Below, in pieces: positions 12,014 through 28,296 of a stretch of 64,000 bases of DNA. The translations under genes were made by a program, and so were the position numbers. The stretch is from Macrostomum lignano (lineage: Eukaryota): contig NIVC01000623.1 in assembly GCA_002269645.1 (NCBI GenBank), positions 1-64,000 on the forward strand, written 5' to 3'. The notes under the pieces were generated by a model. The model was not told the DNA's origin. It worked only from the letters and a program-made list of their open reading frames with translations, and did no database searches. Position 1 is the stretch's first letter, and the number at the start of each line of letters is the position of its first letter.

Positions 12014-15000
12014 ATGATGGCGGCTGGCCTTCCTAACGATGTGAGCGTCGTCGACTACCTGGGCTACGACCCGGCGTTGCCGCTGCCACGCGACATCGAG
12101 GCCGTGGGCAACATCAATCTCGACGATTTAAACGGGCTGGTAGAAAACGTCGATCTGGAAGCGCAGCAGGTTTTCATTCTGCCGCAACAGCTGCAGGATT
12201 CGCCAGATCAGGTGTCTGTGATGCCGCCACCGCCGCCACCACCCCCGCCGCCGCCACCCCTTTGGCCTCCGCATGTCGCCGGGAGCCTTTCAATGACTCA
12301 CCATCCAGCTCCTCCAGCTTCTCAGCAGCAGCGCGCGGAGATTCCCAAACAGCTGCGGGACCGAGTTGAGAAAACCTCCGAGGCCATACAGCTGCCTGTG
12401 CACACCATCAGCTGTGAGTGCCTGGCTCCTATGTTGCTTAAACATGGATCAGGGACAGGGGGGGTTGAGCCGAATTGGCTGACATTGAAAAGTTGGTTTT
12501 GTGACAAGTTGGGCAGTAAATACGCCCGTAACAACCATTCATTCACCAATGCCCCTCTCCGATTACTCTTTCTTATTCCCCTCTCCCATACCCCTCTGGC
12601 CTATCCCCTCTCCCATTCCACTCTCCCATTCCCCTCTCCCACTCCTATTCCCCTCTCCAATTCCCCTCTCCCGTTCCTCTCTCCCATTCCACTCTCCCGT
12701 TCCCCTATTTCCCTCTCCCGTTCCCCTCTCCCGTTCCTCTATCCCATTCCCCTCTCCCGTTCTCCTCTCCCGTTCCCCTCTCCCATTCCCCTCTCCCATT
12801 CCCCTCTCCCGTTCTCCTCTCCCATTCCCCTCTCCCGTTCCTCTCTCCCATTCCACTCACCCATTCCCCTCTCCGATCCCCCTCTCCCATTCCCCTCTCC
12901 CATTCCCCTCTCTCATTCCCCTCTCCCATTCCCCTCTCTTCATTCCCCCTTTCCATTCCCCTCTCTCATTCCCCCTCCCATTCCCTTCTCCCATTCCCCT
13001 CTGGCCTATCCCACTCTCCCATTCCCTCTCCTATTCCCCTCTCCCACCTCTCCCATTCCCCTCAACTTCCTCTGTCCATTCCTACTCAGTCTGTGTAACA
13101 ACAACCCTGCAGCCTGGAGTTCTCACCAGAAGTTGAAGTGGATCAAGGCCATGGTGACGCGACACCTGCCCAACCCGTCAGTGCAGCAGCATCAGCGGCT
13201 GTTCAACCTCGGCAACGAGCTCAGCCAGTCCGACAGGCGCAGCCTCGAGGAGCTGATCCAGTTGGTGGAACAGGCTGCCCAGGATCCGAGCATCGGCAGG
13301 AAGCTCACCGCTGAGCTCAACGGCTGGCGAAGAGGTGAGCAGGGGTCTGGTGTCTGGCGCTGAACAGCAGCTATTTGTGTCGGAGGGCGTGGCATCTGCA
13401 TCAATGGTGAGATAGAAATCTTCAGATTACGTAGCAACAGGAGAGCATGGGAAGCCGGTATTTGATTAAGTACGGATTACTGCAGAAGGGCTGTGTGCAC
13501 CCTGACGCAACGCGTTTGGCGACATCGTCAAACCTCTGACCCATTCCGCGGACTGCTGAGCACATACTTGTACACAGGCACGCACTCATACAGACCTCCG
13601 ATCCCAGACCTCCGATCCCAGACCTCCGATCCCAGACCTCCGATCCCAGACCTCCGATCCCAGACCTCCGATCCCAGACCTCCGATCCCAGACCTCCGAT
13701 CCCAGACCTCCGATCCCAGACCTCCGATCCCAGACCTTCGATTCAAGTATCTCACGATCTCAAGTATCTCAGGATCCAAGTATCTCACGGTCCAAGTATC
13801 TCACGGTCCAAGTATCTCACGGTCCAAGTATCTCACGGTCCAAGTATCTCACGGTCCAAGTATCTCACGGTCCCAAGTATCTCACGGTCCAAGTATCTCA
13901 CGGTCCAAGTATCTCACGGTCCAAGTATCTCACGGTCCAAGTATCTCACGGTCCAAGTATCTCACGGTCCAAGTATCTCACGGTCCAAGTATCTCACGGT
14001 CCAAGTATCTCACGGTCCAAGTATCTCACGGTCCAAGTATCTCACGGTCCAAGTATCTCACGGTCCAAGTATCTCACGGTCCAAGTATCTCACGGTCCAA
14101 GTATCTCACGGTCCAAGTATCTCACGGTCCAAGTATCTCACGGTCCAAGTATCTCACGGTCCCAAGTATCTCACGGTCCAAGTATCTCACGGTCCAAGTA
14201 TCTCACGGTCCAAGTATCTCACGGTCCCAAGTATCTCACGGTCCAAGTATCTCACGATCCAAGTATCTCACGGTCCAAGTATCTCACGATCCAAGTATCT
14301 CACGGTCCAAGTATCTCACGATCCAAGTATCTCACGGTCCCAAGTATCTCACGGTCCAAGTATCTCACGATCCAAGTATCTCACGGTCCAAGTATCTCAC
14401 GATCCAAGTATCTCACGGTCCAAGTATATCATGGATGTGAAGATCGCACGAACAACCTGCCGGCCAATTTCCTTGCAGAAGCCCCAAATGAAAAAAAACT
14501 TACCATTGAAGACAGCGAGATTACGGCGAATTTATATCTTATGAATAAAGTCCCTTCAATACGTACTTTTAAAAACTATTTGTTCTCGAAATCCACCAAT
14601 GGAATATTTACAAAGAAAACAAAGAAAACAAATAATTGTTGTTGTTTATGACATCAAATTTCCTTTGCAGTTGATTTCCGTTGATATCTTTTTCTTCAAA
14701 ATAAAGCCTACATTTCGCGAAATATTAAAAAAACGCTATTAACTCTTCTATATAAGTAGACGATATAGCATTTTAATTAACTGCTCGTACTATCAGGGTA
14801 AACAATCCAGCCTAACTGCCAGAAACTATACTTAAAAAACGTTGCCCTATAAACTTGGTCACCAAATTAATTACTCAATCTGATTGCTTCCAGTCTGCGA
14901 GGTTCACCTGGTCGAGCTGAGGAGCATAAAGCCGGAGCCGAAGCCAGGAACCCACGGCAGGGGAACCGGTGAGTCGGCGGCTGTTCCAGGGTGTCAGATC

Positions 15001-15937
15001 CCAGAGCCCCGATCCCAGACCCCCGATCCCAGACCCCCGATCCCAGAGCTCCGATCCCAGACCTCCGATCCAAGTATCTAACGATCCCAAGTATCTCACG
15101 ATCCAAGTATCTCACGATCCCAAGTATCTCACGATCCAAGTATCTAACGATCCAAGTATCTAACGATCCCAAGTATCTCACGATCCAAGTATCTCACGAT
15201 CCAAGTATCTCACGATCCAAGTATCTCCCGATTAAAGTATCTCACGATCCCAAGTATCTCACGATCAAAAGTATCTCACGATCCCAAGTATCTCACGATC
15301 CCAAGCATCTCACGATCCAAGTATCTAACGATCCCAAGTATCTCACGATCCCAAGCATCTCACGATCCAAGTATCTAACGATCCCAAGTATCTCACGATC
15401 CAAGTATCTCACGATCCCAAGCATCTCACGATCCAAGTATCTAACGATCCCAAATATTTCACGATCCCAAGTATCCCATTCTGGGATCCTGCAAAAGTGC
15501 AAATTAAACTTCACACAGTACTGATGGCATACTACAATGCTACCCCCTCCCCCCAACGCCCAGGCGACTACCTATGGGAGCACGTGCTCCGCCTGCTAAT
15601 GGAAGGCAGCCCCACGGTGGCCTGGCTGAACAGGGAGGAGGGCCTGTTCGTCTTCAAGGACAGCAGCGGAGCGGCCAGGTCCTGGGGCTACACTAAGAAC
15701 AATGTCAACATGAGCTTTGAGAAGATGAGCCGGTCCATCCGGCAGTACTACAGGCCAGACGGGACCGGCATCATTGAGAAGGCCCCCGAGCAGCCCAAGC
15801 TGCACTACAAGTTTAACATGTTCCACCCGGAGGTGGCCAGCTTTCTGGCCAAGAATTTCCGCGCCATCTGCGAGCGCCACGCCTTCCTGAGCCGCGTGGT
15901 GCACGGCGCCCCGGTTGGGTCAGAAAATCTCTGTTGA
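12014..15937 (+). CDS. ETS transcription factor, SPDEF-like recognition helix, with degenerate PNT/SAM-like region (4 exons, about 371 aa)
   Basis: Exons 12014-12413, 13113-13334, 14894-14968 and 15519-15937 join in phase (1,1,1). ETS domain reads YLWEHVLRLL...W...F...AARSWG...MSFEKMSRSIRQYY...LHYKF. Exon 2 WSSHQKLKWI resembles a PNT helix. The exon 2 acceptor choice is inferred from phase. Confidence 0.85.
12560..13080. repeat. Pyrimidine-rich low-complexity tract (CCCCTCTCCCATT-like) in ETS intron 1
   Basis: Degenerate CT-rich repeats between donor GTGAGT (12414) and acceptor CAG (13112). Confidence 0.9.
13595..14427. repeat. Composite satellite: 14-nt (CTCCGATCCCAGAC)n followed by 16/17-nt (TCCAAGTATCTCACGG)n
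   Basis: Read directly in ETS intron 2. Confidence 0.95.
14998..15475. repeat. Second copy of the same 14-nt + 16/17-nt composite satellite (ETS intron 3)
   Basis: Same unit order as 13595-14427, with the CACGAT variant of the 16-mer. Confidence 0.9.
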
Positions 15938-16004: not shown

Positions 16005-16585
16005 GATCACTGCTTGATAATGTCACTGCCAGGCAGTGGCACTGCTTGACAATGTCACTGCCAGCAATGTCGCTGCCAGGCAATGTCACTGCCAGGCAAT
16101 GTCACTGCTTGATAATGTCACTGCCAGACAATGTCGCTGCCAGGCAATGTCACTGCAAGACAATGTCACTGCTTGACAATATCACTGGTTGATAATGTCT
16201 CTGCCAGGCAGTGGCACTGCTTGACAATGTCACTGCTTGACAATATCACTGCTTGATAATGTCTCTGCCAGGCAGTGGCACTGCTTGACAATGTCACTGC
16301 TTGACAATATCACTGCTTGACAATGCCACTGCCAGGCAATGTCACTGCCAGACAATGTCGCTGCCAGGCAATGTCACTGCAAGACAATGTCACTGCTTGA
16401 CAATATCACTGCTTGATAATGTCTCTGCCAGGCAGTGGCACTGCTTGACAATGTCACTGCTTGACAATATCACTGCTTGACAATGCCACTGCCAGGCAAT
16501 GTCACTGCCAGACAATGTCGCTGCCAGGCAATGTCACTGCAAGACAATGTCACTGCTTGACAATGTCACTAATGTCACTGCCAGA
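16005..16585. repeat. 16-nt minisatellite (CAATGTCACTGCTTGA / CAATGTCACTGCCAGG)
   Basis: Tandem degenerate units just downstream of the + strand ETS stop codon. Confidence 0.9.
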
Positions 16586-17360: not shown

Positions 17361-20300
17361 TCAGACACCAATCTCTTCTTTGATAACTCCGTCTGCAGCC
17401 AACTTCTCGTAGTGCCCACCAGGATGGTTCTTTATAAATTTCAACACCTGCGGATGCTGCAGGTTGAAGGCAAAGTGAAGCCTGCGACCCTTCACAGGAT
17501 CTGGGATCATTGTGCGATAGTACTTGTTCTCATTCCGGATCCAGTAGTCCCGGATGCAGCGGCTCATCTTCTCGTAGCTCATGTTTTCATTCTCCTTGTA
17601 CTGACCCCAGCGCCGGGCCGCCTGGTTGGCGTCGGTGAACGCGAAGACGCCCGCATCTTGGCGCAGTTCCTTCCAGCCGATGCAAGTGCGCCCGTCAAGC
17701 AGGTCCTTCAGCAGGAACTGCCACAGCAGCAGCTTGCCTTTGCGTCTCTTCTTGTACGGCACCGGCGGCTGGGCCGAGGCCCCTGAGGATGACGAGCAGC
17801 TGGGCAAGCTCACGGCCCGGTCCGGCTGCTCTTCCAGCTGCTCGGTATCTTCGAGCTCTCTTTTCTTTGGCAGCTCCGCCACTGCCGCGGGATGTCCCTG
17901 CCAGGATGGACTCGCCGTTGGCTCGCCCGTCTCGGCAGACTGTTGAGTCACGATTCTGAAGGATACAGGTAACAGTGTTGATGCAAGTTCAAGGACTTTG
18001 CAGCGTTTGTCTGGGCTTACAAAGGACAAAACATTATGAAACTGCTCAAAATTTCTACAGAATCAGCAGGCTGAATACTACAGAATCGGCAGACTACATA
18101 CTACAGAATCAGCAGACTAAATACTACAGAATCAGCAGACTAAATACTACAGTATCAGTACACTAAATACTACAGAATCAGTAGACTAAATACTACAGAA
18201 TCAGCAGACTAAATGCTACAGAATCAGCAGACTAAATGCTACAGAATCAGTAGACTAAATACTACAGAATCAGCAGACTAAATGCTACAGAATCAGCAGA
18301 CTACATACTACAGAATCAGCAGACTAAATACTACAGAATCAGCAGACTAAATACTACAGAATCAGCAGACTAAATACTACAGAATCAGTAGACTAAATAC
18401 TACAGAATCAGCAGACTAAATACTACAGAATCAGTAGACTAAATACTACAGAATCAGCAGACTAAATACTACAGAATCAGTAGACTAAATACTACAGAAT
18501 CAGTAGACTAAATACTACAGAATCAGCAGACTAAATACTACAGAATCAGTAGACTAAATACTACAGAATCAGCAGACTAAATACTACAGAATCAGCAGAC
18601 TAAATGCTACAGAATCAGTAGACTAAATACTACAGAATCAGTAGACTAAATACTACAGAATCAGTAGACTAAATACTACAGAATCAGCAGACTAAATACT
18701 ACAGAATCAGTAGACTAAATACTACAGAATCAGCAGACTAAATGCTACAGAATCAGCAGACTAAATGCTACAGAATCAGTAGACTAAATACTACAGAATC
18801 AGCAGACTAAATGCTACAGAATCAGCAGACTACATACTACAGAATCAGCAGACTAAATACTACAGAATCAGCAGACTAAAGCACGCGAAGGCGTATTCAG
18901 CATGCCAGTGAAGTATGAGACAGACTAGGCCCATGGGCTAAGGTCTGCGATGCTTCACGCCTGCCCCTATCTTCAGCAGGTCAAGGCTGGTGGGAGGTCT
19001 GCACCCTCTATTTGCCTCTGGCAGCCGCAGACCCCCCCCACGCTGTCTCGCAAGTCGACCCAGGGTACTCGTCCCCGCGTGTGTTCAAGGCAGTCCCTAG
19101 GGCTGCTGGACAGACTGGGCTCCGGCGCTGGCGACCCTATCCAGTGGCTTCGGCCGAATTTGGGTATGCGGGTCTGGCTCGCCAACCTGCAGGCCGTGGT
19201 ACTGCTCAACGTACTCTCTAATGCCTAAGGTGTTGACCGTGCCGATGGGCTGGAAGGCCGGGGAGTAGTCCGGTCGCAAGCGGTCCCCCTCCTGGTGTCG
19301 GGCCAGCCTTGAGGGTGCTATTGGCCTACTGCCCGGTCAGGTGGAGCGGCCGGGTGGGTACCGCGCCCCTTTGAGGGTAGCCCACCAACCTTTTATCATG
19401 GCCTTCGAGCCGTCTATGGATAATCAAGCTAACTCTAGGGACGGGGACCCTTCTAAACCCCAACCTCAGTCCGAAGGACCGGCCGGCCCTGCTGGCAGAT
19501 CCCAACCGACTGATTCAACTGTGGCAAAGGAAGGACCGGCTGGCTCTGCTGGCAGATCCGACCAGAGCTACCAAACTCAAAATACCCAAAGACCTGCCAG
19601 CTCCGCTGGTGGATCTAAGGGAACCGCGAGCTCTGAGCCTAAAGGACCGGCCAAATCTGGCAGATCCGATGAAGCTCAGCGGGCTCGGCTTGAGCGCAAA
19701 CGCGCTAAACAACGCGCCAAAAGGCAGGCCAAGAAGGGAGCTGCGGGGGCCAAAGCGGCGGCGTCCACCATGGATGCTAAAGCGACTGGAGTCCCAAGGC
19801 AACCAGGCGGGCCGGCCGGTGGAAGCTCCAGTAGTTCAGCGGCGGCGCTCCCTGGAGCTGCTGCCGCGGCTGCTGAGGCCGAAACCACGGCGCAACAAAT
19901 GGCCACTGCCAACAAGGAGGTTCCTTCGGGAGCTACCTTTGCGGCGAAGGCCAAGGCCAAAATCCCGGGAGTGATCATCCAAGGTCGCGACCAGGACTGG
20001 ACCACTGATCAGCTTCAAAAAGTGTGGAGTGCTGTTGACTCCTATCTGATTGAGCTGACTGTCGAGGAGGGAATCTCCATCGGCGTTGAGCGGATGGTGC
20101 TGCGAAGCACATTCGTTCTTATTGCTCCTAGCAGCGAGGAGGACGCTCGGCGGCTGCTCCAGCGGCTACCGACGGTCTCCTTGGATGCTGACCTTGGTGG
20201 AGCTCTTTTTCTTCGCGAGGGCCAGCGTCCAAAGACGATACCCTATGTGGTTTTCGTCCCTGCTAAGAGCACCGCAGCTGGACCAGACGTTATTCGCCGG

Positions 20301-23300
20301 GTCCTACTGCGTCTGAACCCCGACCTCCCTGCTAGTGGACTGGTGTATCACCGCAAAGTCCGCAGGGGGGAGACGGGCAACTCAATTGTCCTCGGCCTTT
20401 CCAGCACTTGGGCGAGTCGGTACCCTAATGGATCCTCTTTCCAGCTGGGTGCCCTCAAGCTCAAGTTGCGCCGAGGAAAGTCTGCCAAAGGGAAGGCTAC
20501 TGCCAACCCCGGCATCTCCGGCAAGAGCGGGGCGCAGTCTAAGGCCCAAGGAAAGGCGCAAGCCGATCCCAAAGCCAAAGCTGCATCTCGCCCCTCTGCT
20601 AGCAGCAGTTCGGCGACCGCGGTAACGGCTCCGGCCGAGCCCCGGGAACCAAACCTGCCAGTCGGAGAAGGAGTTGAGGACGAGGCCGGGTCTTCGGAAT
20701 CCGAGCTCTCCTCGGCCACCTTGGTGGGGTCTGAAGGTAAAGATGCAGGTGAGGAAGCTTCCTCCATCCTGTCATCGGAGCCTGAGGACTCTGCTGGGGG
20801 GCCGGTGGGGGTGAGGAGGCCATGGACGTCGACCAACTCCCATCTCCCAGTCAAGCCCCAGCGGCCTGGGACGAGGACGATCTGTTGTCCAAGTCTCCTT
20901 GATGGCCCTGGGCTCTAGCCAGATATTGCATTTAATACAGTATGACTAAGCTCCACGCTGCCAAAGGAGCGACATTCTGTCTGCAAATAAATTTACAGCA
21001 TTGCGTATCTGCGTCAGTAAATCTGATGAAGATTGCTGAGCTGTACAGGCCAGGCCTCATCCTGATCCAGGAACCCTGGATGCGCAACGGTAAGTTGCCC
21101 AACATTCCCTCTGGCTACTCTGATTTTTATGTGTGTGGCCCGGGGAACAGCCGCCCTAGAGCGGCTATCCTCGCTGCTAGCCATCTCCAGGCTTGGCTGA
21201 GGACTGATCTCTCTGATGGAGACCTTTGCGTCATCCAATCTAATCATTTCTCTCCGCGTACGTGTCTTGTTGCCTCGGTTTATATCCCAGGCGACAGAGA
21301 CCCTGCTCCCGAGAGTTTACTGCGCCTTGCGCAGTACTGCGAGTCCCAGAACGCTGAGCTGTGCTTAGGGGGCGACCTCAACGCGCACCACAAGCACTGG
21401 GGCAGCAAAGATACCAACACTAGAGGAGAGGAGCTTCTGGCCCTCATCTCTAACACAAACCTCATGCTCTGCAACCGCGGCAGCACTCCTACCTTTAATA
21501 ATGGCAGATGGACCGAGGTCCTCGACGCCACACTCGTTACCCCAAGACTCTTTGACAGAGTCAAGGAGTGGAGAGTCTGGTCTGAGGAGCCCTCCCTGTC
21601 TGACCACTGCTTTATCGCCTTTAATATCGCGGACACTAAAACCCAGTCTCCGATCACTTGGAGACGCAATATCCGCAACACTGATTGGGCGGCCTACAAG
21701 GCTGCCCTTGATCTGCACCTGCAGGAACTCACGGACTTACGTCCGATTGAGACCTGCGAGGATGTGGATCATATGGCTGAGACGCTGACAGGTTGCATTA
21801 TTGCAGCCTACGAAGCGGCTTGTCCTGCTCGCGCCTACAGAGGCAAGACCTCGGCGCCGTGGTGGAACCCGGAGCTGGGGAAACTCAGGCGGAAGGCCAA
21901 AAGCCTTCATCGCCGTGCCATGAAGACCGGAAACCCGGAGGACATGGAGCTTTTCCGGCAAGCCTCCCGCAATTTCAAATCTGAAGTGCGCAAGGCCAAG
22001 GAATGTAAGTGGCGCCAATTCTGCAATGAATTGGATCAAGACAGACCTACTTCTAGGCTTGTCAAGGCCCTTACAATGGACAAAATGTCCAAATTAGCCA
22101 TGATCAAAAAAGATGATGGCTCTTTTACTAAAGACCCTGAAGAAGTGCTTCAGCATATGCTTAGCACATTCTTCCCGAGGGTACCTACTGCTAGACCGGA
22201 GCCCAACCATTCGATGGATGGAGCCACCCTAGCGGCGGGCATTGTCACTGAAGACCTAATCGCTCGTGCGGTCAGAACCTTCAAACCCTTCAAATCTCCT
22301 GGACCTGATGGTATCTACCCTGTTCTCCTTCGTGAAGCAGCCAAGATACCCTCGTTCCTGAGACTCACCCGCAATCTTATGCGGGCCTCTATCCAGCTGG
22401 GATACGTTCCCAAAAGCTGGACTGAAGCTCGAGTAGTCTTTATTCCCAAACCTGGGAAGGGTGACTACCAAAGCGTCAAGGCCTTCCGGCCAATTAGCTT
22501 AACGTCAGCAATGCTTAAGCTCACTGAGAGGCTTATTCTCTGGCGGCTGCTCTCCTGCGAGCTGACAGCGATGCCCCTCAGCAATAATCAGCACGCCTTC
22601 CGTACCGGGAGGTCGACTGACAGCGCCCTGCATGCGATTGTCGAAAAGATTGAACGGGCGGTACTGGGTGACGGTTACGCCCTGGCTCTCTTTCTTGACA
22701 TTGTTGGCGCCTTCGACAACGTTATCTTTGAAGCGTTTCAGAGGGCCCTTCAAAATCGCAAAGCTCATGCTACCCTCATACGGTGGATCATGTACATGAT
22801 CTCCAACCGTACGGTCACTGCCCAACTTCTTGGGCAAACTGCCTCCACCAGAGTCTGTAAGGGTGGACCCCAAGGCGGAGTCCTCACCCCGACGCTCTGG
22901 AACCTGGTCATGGACGCTCTTCTGAGTGACTCCCGACCTGACCCCGTCTTCAAAGTCGGGTATGCTGATGACGTCACGGCCATTGTGGCAGGACCGTCTC
23001 CCAGCACGCTCAGGGATCTGATGCAGAGCTTTATCCGCAAAGCAGAATCCTGGGCCAATGACAATGGTTTGGAACTCTCTGAGCCCAAAACCGTTGCCAT
23101 TATGTTTACCAGCAGACTACGCTGGAACATACGTCCTCTGCAGCTCTACGGCAGAGATATTGCCTTCGCGCACCAGACCAGATGTCTCGGGGTCACACTT
23201 GACCACCGGCTCAACTGGTCCTTCCACGTGAAAGCAAAAGCTAAGCGTGCCTCAGCCATCCTGGCCCAGCTCCGACGAGCACTTGGCACTTCTTGGGGTC

Positions 23301-26300
23301 TATCCCCAAAGCGGCTTTGGTGGATCTATACTTCCGTAGTTAGACCTGCCATTACGTACGCCTCTGTTGTCTGGGTTAGCGCTACCCAGGTCAAAAGCCA
23401 TGCAGACCTGCTCAACACGATCCAAGGCAGAGCGTGTAGGCTCATCTGCAACGCCACCAGGTCCACGCCCTTTGCTGGCATGGGGGCCTTTCTTAATCTT
23501 CCGCCTCTTGACCTCTTCATCAGGGGTGAGGCGGCTAGAACGACGCGGCGTCTAATTGATGCCGGCGTCAAATTCATTTACATGAGAGCACCTGCTAAGC
23601 GGAACCTTGTCCCGCATAGCGATCTGTGCCTCAACTTTCTCAACGAGTGTCAGGCCAATCGCGTCTTCACCGATGGCATTGCCTCAACGCTCAACCTGAG
23701 ACAGCGCTACTCCGTAGCTATCGACTCGCGCGATAACATCAATGACCATTGGAACCCTGGTGAGCTTCATTGCTACACCGACGGTTCTAAGCAGTCAGCC
23801 AACACCGGCTTTGGTGTTGGAATCTTTCTGAACGGGAGGGTCATCGCTACCCACGCTCAATACACTGGGGTCAACTCCAGTGTTTTCCAAAATGAAGTTC
23901 TGGCCATCAGCTCCTGCACTGCAGAGCTTCTCGCCACTGGCGTTACTGGTAAGAACATCATTTTCCATTCGGACAGCCAAGCTGCCTTGCACGCCATCAG
24001 TGGCTGCAGCACCAACTCTGCTACAGTCCTTGACTGTATCAAACTCCTCAATGTGTTGGGTTCCGCCAACAAAATTACCCTTAAGTGGGTTCCGGGGCAT
24101 GTGGGGATCCGAGGAAATGAGTTGGCTGACACCCTTGCAAAAGTTGGTGCCTCCGGCTCCTCTCTCGGCCCCGAACCTCTTGTCCCGATTCCTGGCTGTG
24201 TCATCGACTCGCGCATCAAAGCGTGGATCAGGACTCAGCACCGCTCGACTTGGGCGAACCGCACGAACTGCAGGCAATCCAGAGGCGCTGTCCCTCAGCC
24301 CTCTCACCAGCTCCGGAAGCTCCTCTTGCGCCTCTCGCGCAGAGACATCCGGGCTGCCACCATGACCCTCTCTGGTCACGGCTGCTTCTCCAGGCACCAG
24401 TACCTGCAGGGCAACGCCACCAACGCCACCTGTAGTTTCTGCAACTCAGGTGACGAAACCGCTGAGCATTTCGTCAGCATCTGTCCCGCCTTCACGCGGG
24501 CCAGACTCACTTACCTCGGGCCACACACATCTATTACTGAAGCGTGCAAACCCGAAAACTTTAATCAGCTCATGCGCTACCTTCGGGCCACCCGCAGGGC
24601 TGAACTCTCCTTTCCAGAGAGCACCATAGCTGCTGGCGACACTGGGGGACCTCCCTGGGCGGCGCCAACCCTCCGTCCATAGCGACGCGTCGGCCGTTCA
24701 GGGACTAGCGGAATGGGCGCCCGCGCCTTCCCGCTGTGTCCCCTCCGGGACAGCCCTGCAGCTAAGTCAAGTAAGTCAAGTCAGCAGACTAAATACTACA
24801 GAATCAGTAGACTAAATACTACAGAATCAGCAGACTAAATACTACAGAATCAGCAGACTAAATACTACAGAATCAGCAAACTAAATGCTACAGAATCAGC
24901 AGACTAAATACTACAGAATCAGCAGACTAAATGCTACAGAATCAGCAGACTAAATGCTACAGAATCAGCAGACTGAATACTACAGAATCAGCAGACTAAA
25001 TGCTACAGAATCAGCAGACTAAATACTACAGAATCAGCAGAATAAATGCTACAGAATCAGCAGACTACATACTACAGAATCAGCAGACTAAATGCTACAG
25101 AATCAGCAGACTAAATGCTACAGAATCAGCAGACTAAATACTACAGAATCAGCAGAGTAAATGCTACAGAATCAGCAGAGTAAATGCTACAGAATCAGCA
25201 GACTAAATGCTACAGAATCAGCAGACTAAATGCTACAGAATCAGCAGACTAAATGCTACAGTATCAGCAAACTAAATACTACAGAATCAGCAGACTAAAT
25301 ACTACAGAATCAGCAGACTAAATACTACAGAATCAGCAGACTAAATGCTACAGAATCAGCAGACTAAATGCTACAGAATCAGCAGACTAAATACTACAGA
25401 ATCAGCAGACTAAATACTACAGAATCAGCAGACTAAATACTACAGAATCAGCAGACTAAATACTACAGAATCAGCAAACTAAATACTACAGAATCAGCAG
25501 ACTAAATACTACAGAATCAGCAAACTAAATACTACAGAATCAGCAGACTAAATGCTACAGAATCAGCAGACTGTTTACTATCAGACTGACTACTGAAAGA
25601 ATTCTAAGAAACTATGGGGAATATTATCACCCAAAAATTGTAAGAATCGCGCATCTTTCAGGCAGATCAGTACATAATCTACCTTAATAATGATGACCGC
25701 TGCGATTGGCTCTCGTGGCTAGAAAAATGCGAACTGTTGCTACGCGGAAACAATGTTATCTTAACTGGCGGTTGCTGAACAACATCAGTTGGAGCAGCTA
25801 TGCTTGGCACTGGAGTCATTGGCAGCAGGTCATTCTCTGCGCACACTGAAATGAGATCACGGGAGGCAATTTATATTTTTTAGTCTTCGCAGGTTCTCGC
25901 AGCGCAATAATCAAAAACTGTAATAAAAAAGATTTATTACAATATAGCAGGGCTACGTTAGCAAAGCCTTCTAGAAAATGCCAACACCATTTTGCTGTCC
26001 AACTATTTTGAAAAAGAGACGGTTAGAGAGCCAAAATTGTTTACATACTGGCGAGGTTTACTGTTGCAGTTGCACAAAAAAGCGTTGAAAAGAGTTTTTA
26101 TTTAAGTGTTGCAGCAGTTTAGATAGTTACGAGTACAATCCACAAAGTAATGGCACTCAAAAAAAATAAATAAACAATTTTTTTCTGATATTTACTTCTG
26201 CAGGTTATAGCAGCAAGCACTCCTGTTACACAGATAAATCGTAATACTATTTTACATGTATATACGTACATCCTGCACTCCAAAGCTGATGTTCCTGGCC

Positions 26301-28296
26301 TGGAAATAGAAAGTACTCTGAAAGTAAATAGCGAATACATGTCAATGGTGCGTTCTCCGGTCAATTTCGTGTGTAGAGTCATCTGAGGGTCTTGAGCTTG
26401 AGCCGCATGGGTCAGGCTACATTTTCGGTCAGATTACATTATGGACCCAGCTAATGTAAGCCAAGGATCAGGCTACAGGTACACCATGGGTCAGGCTACA
26501 GGTACACCATGGGTCAGGCTACAGGTACACCAAGGATCAGGCTACAGATACACCATGGGTCAGGCTACAGGTACACCATGGGTCAGACTACAGGTACACC
26601 ATGGGTCAGGCTACAGGTACACCAAGGATCAGGCTACAGATACACCATGGGTCAGGCTACAGGTACACCATGGGTCAGACTACAGGTACACCATGGGTCA
26701 GGCTACAGGTACACCATGGGTCAGACTACAGGTACACCATGGGTCAGGCTACAGGTATGCCATGGGTCAGGCTACAGGTATACAAATGGGTCAGGCTACA
26801 GGTATACAAATGGGTCAGGTTACAGGTATACAAATGGGTCAGGCTACAGGTATGCCATGGGTCAGGCTACAGGTATACAAATGGGTCAGGCTACAGGTAT
26901 ACAAATGGGTCAGGCTACAGGTATACAAATGGGTCAGGCTACAGTTATACAAATGGGTCAGGCTACAGGTATACAAATGGGTCAGGCTACATGTTTTCAA
27001 ATGGGTCAGGCTACAGGTATACAAATGGGTCAGGCTACAGGTATACAAATGGGTCAGGCTACAGGTATACAAATGGGTCAGGCTACAGGTATATAAATGG
27101 ATCAGGCTACAGGTATATAAATGGGTCAGGCTACAGGTATACAAATGGGTCAGGCTACAGGTATACAAATGGGTCAGGCTACAGGTATACAAATGGGTCA
27201 GGCTACAGGTATACAAATGGGTCAGGCTACAGGTATACAAATGGGTCAGGCTACAGGTATACAAATGGGTCAGGCTACAGGTATACAAATGGGTCAGGCT
27301 ACAGGTATACAAATGGGTCAGGCTACAGGTATACAAATGGGTCAGGCTACATGTATACAAATGGGTCAGGCTACAGGTATACAAATGGGTCAGGCTACAG
27401 GTATACAAATGGGTCAGGCTGCAGGTATACAAATGGGTCAGGCTACAGTTATACAAATGGGTCAGGCTACAGGTATACAAATGGGTCAGGCTACAGGTAT
27501 ACAAATGGGTCAGGCTACAGGTATATAAATGGGTCAGGCTACAGGTATACAAATGGGTCAGGCTACAGGTATGCCATGGGTCAGGCTACAGGTATACAAA
27601 TGGGTCAGGCTACAGGTATACAAATGGGTCAGGCTACAGGTATACAAATGGGTCAGGCTACAGGTATATAAATGGGTCAGGCTACAGGTATACAAATGGG
27701 TCAGGCTACAGGTATACAAATGGGTCAGGCTACTACAGGTATACAAATGGGTCAGGCTACTACAGGTATACAAATGGGTCAGGCTACTACAGGTATACAA
27801 ATGGGTCAGGCTACTACAGGTATACAAATGGGTCAGGCTACAGGTATACAAATGGGTCAGGCTACAAGTACCCAATGAGTCAGAAGGCCAATGCTGCAAC
27901 AGAGTTCACGATTAAAGTGGAAAGCTAAAATTCTGTGTGACCATGGGATGTTTGTTCAATAGTTATCCATATAACAAAGGATAAATCTTAAAGGAATGAG
28001 TTTTGAAAAATCGAAAGAGAAAGTAAAATTTTCGGGTTGCTTACAGCCTAGTTTGTCTATTGAAAGCTCGTTAATTGATAAAACTGTGAAATAATTGCTG
28101 CGAGGACTTTACAGGCTTATATGATAGATGCCCCAGTTAACTTACTCGATTCATGAAACATTTGATCGTCGCAGTCTCCACTAAAGCCAACGCACTGGTG
28201 CAGGTCTTGCAGATCCGTCTCAACAAACTCGCTGTTGTGCAGGTCCTCAGTGGGCTCCAAGCACTCCGCTTTCGTCTTCCACATTGACTGCTGCAT
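17361..28296 (-). CDS. Second, divergent ETS transcription factor (at least 3 exons, about 302 aa)
   Basis: Exons 28296(ATG; possible acceptor at 28308)-28146, 25845-25683 and 17955-17361 join in phase (1,2). ETS domain reads LLWQFLLKDLL...W...F...AARRWG...MSYEKMSRCIRDYW...RRLHFAF. The 5' end is uncertain. Confidence 0.8.
18881..19122 (+). ncRNA. HDV-like self-cleaving ribozyme at the retrotransposon 5' end (predicted)
   Basis: P1 GCACGCG (18881-87) / CGCGTGT (19076-82); P2 GACCCA (19057-62) / TGGG(C)TC (19116-22); P3 GGG (19063-65) / CCC (19073-75); L3 TACTCGT; P1.1 AC (19067-68) / GT (19083-84); P4 19089-19107; J4/2 CAGA with C19111. Confidence 0.8.
19398..20918 (+). CDS. Retrotransposon ORF1 (nucleic-acid chaperone, inferred)
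   Basis: Long open frame with first ATG at 19398, a basic patch RKRAKQRAKRQAKK, a central globular region and low-complexity ends. No CCHC knuckle seen. Confidence 0.85.
   Translation: MAFEPSMDNQANSRDGDPSKPQPQSEGPAGPAGRSQPTDSTVAKEGPAGSAGRSDQSYQTQNTQRPASSAGGSKGTASSEPKGPAKSGRSDEAQRARLERKRAKQRAKRQAKKGAAGAKAAASTMDAKATGVPRQPGGPAGGSSSSSAAALPGAAAAAAEAETTAQQMATANKEVPSGATFAAKAKAKIPGVIIQGRDQDWTTDQLQKVWSAVDSYLIELTVEEGISIGVERMVLRSTFVLIAPSSEEDARRLLQRLPTVSLDADLGGALFLREGQRPKTIPYVVFVPAKSTAAGPDVIRRVLLRLNPDLPASGLVYHRKVRRGETGNSIVLGLSSTWASRYPNGSSFQLGALKLKLRRGKSAKGKATANPGISGKSGAQSKAQGKAQADPKAKAASRPSASSSSATAVTAPAEPREPNLPVGEGVEDEAGSSESELSSATLVGSEGKDAGEEASSILSSEPEDSAGGPVGVRRPWTSTNSHLPVKPQRPGTRTICCPSLLDGPGL
20942..24682 (+). 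CDS. Retrotransposon ORF2: AP endonuclease, reverse transcriptase, RNase H, C-terminal CCHC (1246 aa)
   Basis: APE: IQEPW, GGDLNAHH, SDH. RT: KSPGPDG, FRPISL, LFLDIVGAFD, PQGG, GYADD, CLGV. RNase H: YTDGS, FQNE, SDSQ, WVPGH, NELAD. Zinc motif CSFC-x8-H-x4-C. No stops or frameshifts. Confidence 0.98.
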   Translation: MTKLHAAKGATFCLQINLQHCVSASVNLMKIAELYRPGLILIQEPWMRNGKLPNIPSGYSDFYVCGPGNSRPRAAILAASHLQAWLRTDLSDGDLCVIQSNHFSPRTCLVASVYIPGDRDPAPESLLRLAQYCESQNAELCLGGDLNAHHKHWGSKDTNTRGEELLALISNTNLMLCNRGSTPTFNNGRWTEVLDATLVTPRLFDRVKEWRVWSEEPSLSDHCFIAFNIADTKTQSPITWRRNIRNTDWAAYKAALDLHLQELTDLRPIETCEDVDHMAETLTGCIIAAYEAACPARAYRGKTSAPWWNPELGKLRRKAKSLHRRAMKTGNPEDMELFRQASRNFKSEVRKAKECKWRQFCNELDQDRPTSRLVKALTMDKMSKLAMIKKDDGSFTKDPEEVLQHMLSTFFPRVPTARPEPNHSMDGATLAAGIVTEDLIARAVRTFKPFKSPGPDGIYPVLLREAAKIPSFLRLTRNLMRASIQLGYVPKSWTEARVVFIPKPGKGDYQSVKAFRPISLTSAMLKLTERLILWRLLSCELTAMPLSNNQHAFRTGRSTDSALHAIVEKIERAVLGDGYALALFLDIVGAFDNVIFEAFQRALQNRKAHATLIRWIMYMISNRTVTAQLLGQTASTRVCKGGPQGGVLTPTLWNLVMDALLSDSRPDPVFKVGYADDVTAIVAGPSPSTLRDLMQSFIRKAESWANDNGLELSEPKTVAIMFTSRLRWNIRPLQLYGRDIAFAHQTRCLGVTLDHRLNWSFHVKAKAKRASAILAQLRRALGTSWGLSPKRLWWIYTSVVRPAITYASVVWVSATQVKSHADLLNTIQGRACRLICNATRSTPFAGMGAFLNLPPLDLFIRGEAARTTRRLIDAGVKFIYMRAPAKRNLVPHSDLCLNFLNECQANRVFTDGIASTLNLRQRYSVAIDSRDNINDHWNPGELHCYTDGSKQSANTGFGVGIFLNGRVIATHAQYTGVNSSVFQNEVLAISSCTAELLATGVTGKNIIFHSDSQAALHAISGCSTNSATVLDCIKLLNVLGSANKITLKWVPGHVGIRGNELADTLAKVGASGSSLGPEPLVPIPGCVIDSRIKAWIRTQHRSTWANRTNCRQSRGAVPQPSHQLRKLLLRLSRRDIRAATMTLSGHGCFSRHQYLQGNATNATCSFCNSGDETAEHFVSICPAFTRARLTYLGPHTSITEACKPENFNQLMRYLRATRRAELSFPESTIAAGDTGGPPWAAPTLRP
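26405..27870. repeat. 23/24-nt minisatellite (ATGGGTCAGGCTACAGGTATACAA)n in the upstream intron of the minus-strand ETS gene
   Basis: Long tandem array; explains the MGQATGIQ and WVRLQVYK ORFs. Confidence 0.95.

Follow-up and report, generated by a model that had tools for sequence, protein, structure and literature searches.

A predicted HDV-like self-cleaving ribozyme at the 5' terminus of a non-LTR retrotransposon with intact open reading frames in the flatworm Macrostomum lignano

We analyzed a 64,000-nucleotide stretch of the Macrostomum lignano genome (contig NIVC01000623.1, positions 1 to 64,000 of the forward strand; hereafter the window) and found it to carry a single intact retrotransposon without long terminal repeats (non-LTR) of 5,900 bp (18881-24780), inserted between two arrays of a 23-bp satellite. 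The first 246 nt of this element (18881-19126) are well supported, by modeling of the fold, as encoding a self-cleaving ribozyme with the nested double-pseudoknot topology of hepatitis delta virus (HDV). The RNA is predicted to cleave itself between 18880 and 18881, a prediction to which we assign a probability of a little over three in four, and a 5'-terminal processing ribozyme is considered the most likely reading of the region. The position of the predicted cut, the presence of every helix of the fold and the compensatory changes found in a relative of the element are the evidence for this reading and are presented first.

Position and predicted fold of the ribozyme

The 23-bp satellite is expected to go on with TA after position 18880. 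GCACGCG is found instead, and the 5' junction is therefore placed at A18880|G18881, with G18881, the first base of helix P1, being also the first non-satellite base. The initial annotation of this DNA had claimed that the predicted cut coincides with the satellite/element junction, and the end of the satellite array at 18880 agrees with this claim. The position is that of the processing ribozymes of long interspersed nuclear elements (LINEs), i.e., at the start of a full-length, reverse transcriptase (RT)-encoding element, with the predicted cut at base 1. No second copy of the element was found within the 64-kb window.

All helices of an HDV-like ribozyme (P1, P2, P3 with its loop L3, P1.1 and P4) could be drawn within 18881-19126 in the canonical 5'-to-3' order (coordinates in Table 1). 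Inspection of the sequence from 18600 to 19400 bore out every base that had been quoted for P1 (GCACGCG/CGCGTGT, with its wobble), and P3 (GGG/CCC), L3 (TACTCGT) and P4 (19089-19107) were likewise found in place. The predicted cleavage site lies directly 5' of the first base of P1, which in the window copy is the G of a G.U wobble, and P1 cannot extend upstream, A18880 being opposite G19083. Within L3, A19067 and C19068 take part in P1.1, and C19070 and G19071 represent the conserved C-G of this loop.

The joining strands and P2 were in part redrawn. P2 had been given as GACCCA paired with TGGG(C)TC; the facing of TGGG with CCCA was retained, but the helix is better drawn as bipartite, with a 1x3 internal loop between two helices of 4 bp each, an arrangement that RNAalifold returned for both copies (that of the window and that of the relative described below). 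The joining strand J1/2, estimated at ~169 nt, does span 169 nt as originally drawn (18888-19056) and is reduced to 166 nt by the redrawn P2. The strand after P1.1 had been read as CAA; this trinucleotide is present, but T19085 had been omitted in front of it. Similarly, J4/2 had been read as CAGA(C), fitting the motif CNRA. The candidate catalytic C19111 does lie in this joining strand, but the strand has 8 nt (GGACAGAC, in which C19111-A-G-A is preceded by GGA and followed by C19115), and the relative does not keep CNRA.

A plain minimum free energy (MFE) fold of 18881-19125 gave P1 as a long-range helix, P3, and a hairpin across the P4 region. Being pseudoknots, P2 and P1.1 cannot be displayed by a nested MFE fold. 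An alternative 3' strand for P2 at 19161-19165, preceded by the more canonical-looking CGAAUU, was rejected, as it has no complementary counterpart in the relative.

Covariation with a close relative

When the protein encoded by the second open reading frame (ORF2) of the element was used as a query, the proteins recovered fell into three levels of identity, with two at 56-57%, another three at 43-44% and a large number at 30-37%. Among the close relatives, a 5' untranslated region (UTR) was present in L001 alone, a 6,492-bp Logan contig (ERR14788467) in which both ORFs are intact and ORF2 is 57% identical to that of the window; covariation was scored between these two sequences, which are 55% identical over the ribozyme region. 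The first base of the L001 contig aligns with G18881, and at the 3' end a terminal CCCTGCAGCTAAGTCAA is common to L001 and the window element. Thus, both ends of the family are consistently defined. An examination of other full-length copies had been proposed in the initial annotation, and L001 was found to start at the homologous G and to keep the pairings.

By this comparison, all eight pairs that differ between the two copies were found to pair in both, six through change on both sides and two through change on one side, and no shared pair was broken (Table 2). Random column pairs that are paired in the window and different in L001 stay paired in 34% of cases, which gives p ~2e-4 for eight of eight. 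As judged from the alignment, the helices are shown to be conserved through compensatory change in this one relative. The covariation that had been argued for P1.1 (G19083/T19084 with C19068/A19067) was substantiated, both pairs being compensated in L001. Of the scan and covariation analysis that had been suggested, the latter showed compensated pairs, in L001 only, and no Rfam model matched.

Table 2. Helices compared between the window copy and L001.
Helix	Window	L001	Change
P1	GCACGC/GCGUGU	GCCUGC/GCAGGC	2 pairs changed on both sides; wobble G.U to G-C
P1.1	C-G, A-U	U-A, C-G	both pairs changed on both sides
P3	GGG/CCC	GGG/CCC	invariant
P2a	CCCA/UGGG	CUCAGA/UCUGAG	2 pairs changed on both sides; 2 additional nt per strand in L001
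P2b	GUCG/CGGC	GCCG/CGGC	U.G to C-G, one side

P1 has 6 bp in L001, where the window's seventh pair (G18887-C19076) is without a counterpart. At the position of P4 a hairpin is present in both copies, of unrelated sequence and of 8 bp in the window versus 11 bp in L001. L3 reads UACUCGU in the window and UCUCCGU in L001, with the leading U and the C-G kept, and the N-C-A-A that follows P1.1 is kept as well.

Level expected by chance

The fold was scored with a strict, sequence-blind descriptor composed of a P1 of 6-7 Watson-Crick pairs (G.U permitted at the first pair only), a P3 of 3 Watson-Crick pairs located immediately before the 3' strand of P1 and having an L3 of 6-9 nt, both P1.1 pairs, a P2 that adjoins P3 and comprises at least 6 pairs and no more than one bulge, and a C no farther than 6 nt from P2. 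Matches were obtained at 18881 for the window element and at base 1 of L001. The background over both strands of the 64-kb window amounted to 95 of 127,800 start positions. When matches were anchored on base 1, dinucleotide-shuffled versions of the 5' UTR matched in 26 of 20,000 cases (2 of 20,000 with a 7-bp P1), and shuffles of L001 gave the same 26 of 20,000. These anchored figures are conservative because the descriptor ignores G1, the L3 nucleotides and P4. The fold at base 1 is more than chance would give. A first, loose descriptor was dropped after it returned dozens of spurious matches in GC-rich relatives; such folds are easily drawn.

Features of the element and its insertion site

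The features of the element, of its predicted ribozyme and of the flanking satellite are collected in Table 1.

Table 1. Coordinates of the element, the predicted ribozyme and the flanking satellite in the window.
Feature	Position	Strand	Description
Satellite, upstream part (insertion target)	18055-18880		Tandem Repeats Finder and sequence; 18868-18880 is TCAGCAGACTAAA, the upstream copy of a 13-nt direct repeat
P1, 5' strand	18881-18887	+	GCACGCG; predicted cut A18880/G18881; P1 duplex -10.4 kcal/mol
Local 5' hairpin	18883-18894	+	ACGC/GCGU (18883-18886 with 18891-18894), loop GAAG; RNAalifold
J1/2 insert	18888-19053	+	166 nt, several hairpins
Hairpin inside J1/2	18911-18955	+	most conserved 5' UTR block, 80-83% identical to L001
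P2, 5' strand	19054-19062	+	P2b GUCG 19054-19057; A19058 unpaired; P2a CCCA 19059-19062
P3 and L3	19063-19075	+	P3 GGG 19063-19065/CCC 19073-19075; L3 UACUCGU 19066-19072 (7 nt)
P1, 3' strand	19076-19082	+	CGCGUGU; 7 bp with 18881-18887, including the wobble G18881.U19082
P1.1, 3' strand, and J1.1/4	19083-19088	+	G19083 and U19084, pairing with C19068 and A19067; then J1.1/4 UCAA
P4 hairpin	19089-19107	+	8 bp, 3-nt loop; folded segment 19086-19111 -11.6 kcal/mol
J4/2	19108-19115	+	GGACAGAC, 8 nt; candidate catalytic cytosine C19111, alternative C19115 (putative assignment)
P2, 3' strand	19116-19126	+	P2a UGGG 19116-19119; CUC unpaired; P2b CGGC 19123-19126
ORF1	19398-20918	+	506 amino acids from ATG
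ORF2	20942-24682	+	1246 amino acids, intact; APE endonuclease, RT, RNase H
3' UTR	24683-24780	+	blocks common to L001: TAGCGGAATGGGCG (24706-24719), CCCTGCAGCTAAGTCAA (24754-24770)
Satellite, downstream part	24781-25572		same 23-bp satellite, Tandem Repeats Finder; 24781-24793 is the second TCAGCAGACTAAA copy

The two TCAGCAGACTAAA copies that flank the element represent either a 13-bp target-site duplication or a 10-bp target deletion, which cannot be told apart because the target is itself a 23-bp tandem repeat. ORF2 has the domain order APE-RT-RNase H, and the closest solved endonuclease was found to be that of TRAS1 (R1 clade). A Pfam search with ORF1 gave no hit; DUF4780 is carried by the ORF1s of distant relatives. 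ORF1 is 86-98% identical to fragments of M. lignano proteins in UniRef, for which no underlying DNA records are on record; this identity points to M. lignano or a very close relative as the host. At its 3' terminus the element ends in GCTAAGTCAAG TAAGTCAAG and is followed directly by satellite.

The 3' end of the window copy is formed by a tandem duplication of TAAGTCAAG (two copies, 24763-24780) instead of a poly(A) tract. The 3' UTR blocks (24706-24719 and 24754-24780 in the window) have their counterpart at approximately 5888-5965 of L001.

Proposed mechanism

For catalysis, for the identity of the catalytic C and for the source of the transcript, we infer the following sequence of events. 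Transcription of the element would begin either at some point in the upstream satellite, giving a longer RNA, or at a promoter belonging to the element, and P3/L3, P1, P1.1, P4 and the bipartite P2 would assemble while the RNA is being synthesized. A cytosine of J4/2 (most likely C19111) and a bound Mg2+ would then catalyze the reaction in which the 2'-OH of A18880 attacks the phosphodiester joining A18880 to G18881, such that the upstream satellite RNA would depart with a 2',3'-cyclic phosphate and the element RNA would begin with a 5'-OH at G18881. Target-primed reverse transcription would copy this RNA to its 5' end, and full-length DNA copies would therefore start with exactly this G.

Additional structure in and near the ribozyme

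The extreme 5' end of the element (18883-18894) can form a local hairpin with a counterpart in L001, where it comprises 5 bp within nucleotides 2-15, with pairs changed on both sides relative to the window. The pairs of this hairpin, like those of P1, covary; thus, three segments co-evolve. The hairpin is weaker than P1 in both elements (-5.1 versus -10.4 kcal/mol in the window, -8.1 versus -10.2 kcal/mol in L001). The nested RNAalifold consensus favors it, but such a consensus is unable to show a pseudoknot, and the hairpin was retained as a competitor of P1 rather than as its replacement. It could act as a kinetic competitor during transcription, or could be the form taken by the 5' end after cleavage.

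The hairpin inside J1/2 (18911-18955) also covaries and is better conserved than the ribozyme core. It could serve as a peripheral activating domain, as a protein-binding site or as a promoter element. Just 3' of the ribozyme, a YUCG-tetraloop hairpin was observed in both elements (19146-19155; approximately 338-351 in L001), with stems that differ (GGC-UUCG-GCC in the window versus CUCGC-CUCG-GCGAG in L001).

These features can be combined into a broader proposal, which we regard as possible but rather unlikely, that the element carries a distinct HDV-like sub-type. Such a sub-type would be characterized by a bipartite P2, by a J4/2 that is devoid of the canonical purines and has a conserved final C, by a covarying 5' hairpin that swaps with P1 (as a switch that times cleavage or caps the new 5'-OH end), and by a conserved J1/2 domain with a second job in protein binding, translation or promoter function. 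Perhaps it would also include targeting of the 23-bp satellite, with satellite transcripts as the obligatory carrier RNA.

Evidence against cleavage and alternative explanations

Several observations weigh against a cleaving ribozyme. When the whole window was searched at the Rfam gathering score no family matched, and a search of 18700-19400 at E<=10 recovered no ribozyme family but only two irrelevant weak hits; the HDV-type models (HDV ribozyme, CPEB3, drz-Agam etc.), twister and hammerhead all failed to match here. The 166-nt J1/2 insert probably accounts for this, by defeating models that are compact. J4/2 is non-canonical in both copies, the CAGA of the window having 3 extra nt before it and 1 after it, and the GCUGC of L001 having a C at the expected place and no A, such that CNRA is not conserved. 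That C of L001 lies directly after the A.G that would close P4, like in the viral ribozyme. Furthermore, L001 has G1-C194 in place of the G.U wobble and a P1 of only 6 bp, the local 5' hairpin competes for the 5' strand of P1 and covaries too, and the covariation is drawn from only two sequences.

The distribution of the fold among relatives also counts against it. Five relatives at 34-36% ORF2 identity that include upstream sequence (L003, L004, L007, L008 and L009) gave no strict match and no 5' UTR similarity, and the ribozyme has therefore been seen so far in one family only. The relative L002, at 44% ORF2 identity, begins inside ORF1. An alignment search with the ORF1 domain found nothing. 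A metagenome scan with the conserved J1/2 motif gave two hits, both in unrelated, bacterial-looking sequence, the same motif gave nothing in viral contigs, and ORF2 scans of viral and prokaryotic genome contigs were likewise negative. In L003, a 7-bp candidate P1 (GGGCTGC, the apparent first bases, with GCAGCCT approximately 90 nt downstream, within 116-236) was not counted, since it needs a 17-nt L3 and has no P4. The complement in L003 is followed by GG, which could pair with CC in the 17-nt loop; this fold departs from the canonical HDV-like one and may be due to chance.

Some of these observations would be explained if the 5' UTR were structured but did not cleave, acting instead as a platform for translation initiation, as a binding site for the element's own proteins, or as a decayed former ribozyme; the HDV-like topology would in that case have been kept for a reason other than catalysis. 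J4/2 departs from C-N-R-A differently in each copy, L001 is devoid of the G.U wobble, the best conserved block is the J1/2 hairpin rather than the core, and Rfam gives no hit; in addition, a role like that of an internal ribosome entry site has been proposed for the HDV-like ribozymes of R2 and L1Tc (PMC6765202). We consider this explanation unlikely. It leaves unaccounted for that P1 starts on base 1 in both elements and that both pairs of P1.1, a helix that matters only for the active-site pseudoknot, covary. The ORFs are intact in both copies, which are therefore both recent and under selection, and active R2 ribozymes themselves keep little in J4/2 beyond one C and one A.

Initiation at an internal promoter, as in many LINEs, could also set the 5' end, in which case a ribozyme would be redundant or secondary, as may be compared with L1Tc. 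The conserved block from +31 to +75 (18911-18955) could be a promoter element at the DNA level, the promoter and the ribozyme of L1Tc lie in the same first 77 nt (PMC3383444), and nothing in the window shows an upstream promoter feeding into the element. This explanation appears quite unlikely: compensatory changes at the RNA level, as seen in P1, P1.1 and P2, are not expected from a promoter, and the conserved block is itself a covarying hairpin. It is, moreover, compatible with a processing ribozyme and not exclusive of it. Chance resemblance is very improbable, for although the partner of the first 7 bases was sought in a GC-rich 5' UTR with many short complements, the loose descriptor gave its dozens of spurious matches and even the strict one matched at 95 positions of the 64-kb window, a match anchored on base 1 has a probability of 1e-4 to 1.3e-3, the same fold stands at the homologous position of L001 with different bases and every changed pair kept, and the L001 contig begins at the same G.

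Comparison with known systems

HDV-like ribozymes are established at the 5' ends of the LINEs R2, R4, Dong, RTE, Baggins and L1Tc, and in R4, Dong, Baggins and L1Tc the cut falls at the first base of the element (PMC3774820, PMC6765202, PMC3185411). The mechanism itself is thus already known, and the general picture, established since 2010-2013, is unchanged; the present case is well supported as a further example of LINE 5' HDV-like ribozymes, with some unusual features. A full-text literature search for Macrostomum together with ribozyme returned nothing relevant.

R2 elements, known from Drosophila, silkmoths and other animals, likewise carry a 5'-terminal double pseudoknot that frees the element RNA from a co-transcript (PMC3774820). 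In R2 ribozymes P1 has 6-7 bp, P2 has at least 5 bp and is often mismatched, and P4 varies; apart from the catalytic C and four other positions there is little conservation, with the C-G of L3 rigidly kept (PMC3774820). Their J1/2 measures 216-498 nt in silkmoths, and in honeybee P1 and P1' are more than 700 nt apart (PMC3774820). Large peripheral domains in J1/2 are reported to speed HDV-like ribozymes by bringing P1 and P2 together (PMC4908430). The element described here resembles R2 in its P1 length, its very large J1/2 and its conserved L3 C and G. By contrast, R2 elements are single-ORF elements with a restriction-like endonuclease and with 28S ribosomal DNA as their sole insertion target, whereas here an APE endonuclease, two ORFs, an RNase H and a 23-bp satellite are found. 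Most R2 ribozymes also cut 9-36 nt upstream, in the 28S sequence, and not at the junction itself as predicted here, and the 'constrained A' of the R2 J4/2 is not kept in L001.

R4 and Dong share cleavage at the exact 5' end of the element, and Dong, which inserts in (TAA)n and is cut from a simple-repeat co-transcript, offers a context much like the satellite context of the window (PMC3774820). These elements differ in belonging to the R4 clade and in their restriction-like endonuclease.

According to PMC6765202 and PMC3774820, HDV-like ribozymes were reported for Baggins1 (LOA clade) and RTE by Ruminski et al. (2011). These resemble the present element in being APE-type LINEs with no known promoter of their own and with a ribozyme (here a predicted one) at the 5' terminus. 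The L1Tc ribozyme of Trypanosoma cruzi (ingi clade) also accompanies APE, RT and RNase H and starts from base 1 (PMC3185411, PMC3383444), but is compact (77 nt), doubles as an internal promoter and is found in a protist, in contrast to the 246 nt with a 166-nt insert observed here. The combination with RNase H has a further parallel in that LOA elements also bear this domain.

Among flatworms, an R2 ribozyme is known from the planarian Schmidtea (PMC3774820) and twister variants from LINEs of Schistosoma mansoni; the latter likewise place a self-cleaving RNA at the 5' end of flatworm LINEs but belong to another ribozyme class (PMC8501958). The predicted fold agrees with the HDV and CPEB3 ribozymes in helix order and pseudoknot topology, in having a G.U wobble where cleavage is expected (in the window copy), in its 2-bp P1.1 and in its C-containing J4/2. 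It differs from them in its enormous J1/2, its bipartite P2 and its longer J4/2, and matches the Rfam model of neither.

Should the RNA cleave as predicted, this would explain the precise 5' end of a LINE with no evident promoter in M. lignano, a model flatworm that can be grown and is amenable to transgenesis. It would also add an RNase H-bearing, APE-type flatworm LINE to the users of HDV-like ribozymes, and would provide a natural test case of what the core needs, in view of the large sequence-conserved J1/2 and the unusual J4/2. Rfam covariance models appear to miss this class when J1/2 is long, and such ribozymes are thus probably under-counted in animal genomes.

Genomic neighborhood

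The + strand ETS-domain exon that had been placed approximately 3 kb upstream of the element does exist (15572-15847), and an ORF for a second ETS domain on the - strand (17361-18029) sits between this exon and the element. Read-through from the upstream exon into the element is pure conjecture. The two stretches that encode ETS domains are oppositely oriented, fall within 2.5 kb of sequence and specify proteins that are 39% identical; satellites separate and surround them. Unrelated short-period satellites were found at 15000-15475, 16007-16570 and 26461-26991 (units of 14/17/33 bp and 16/64 bp and a second 23-bp unit), and the long ORFs at 26441-27928 are mere translations of repeats.

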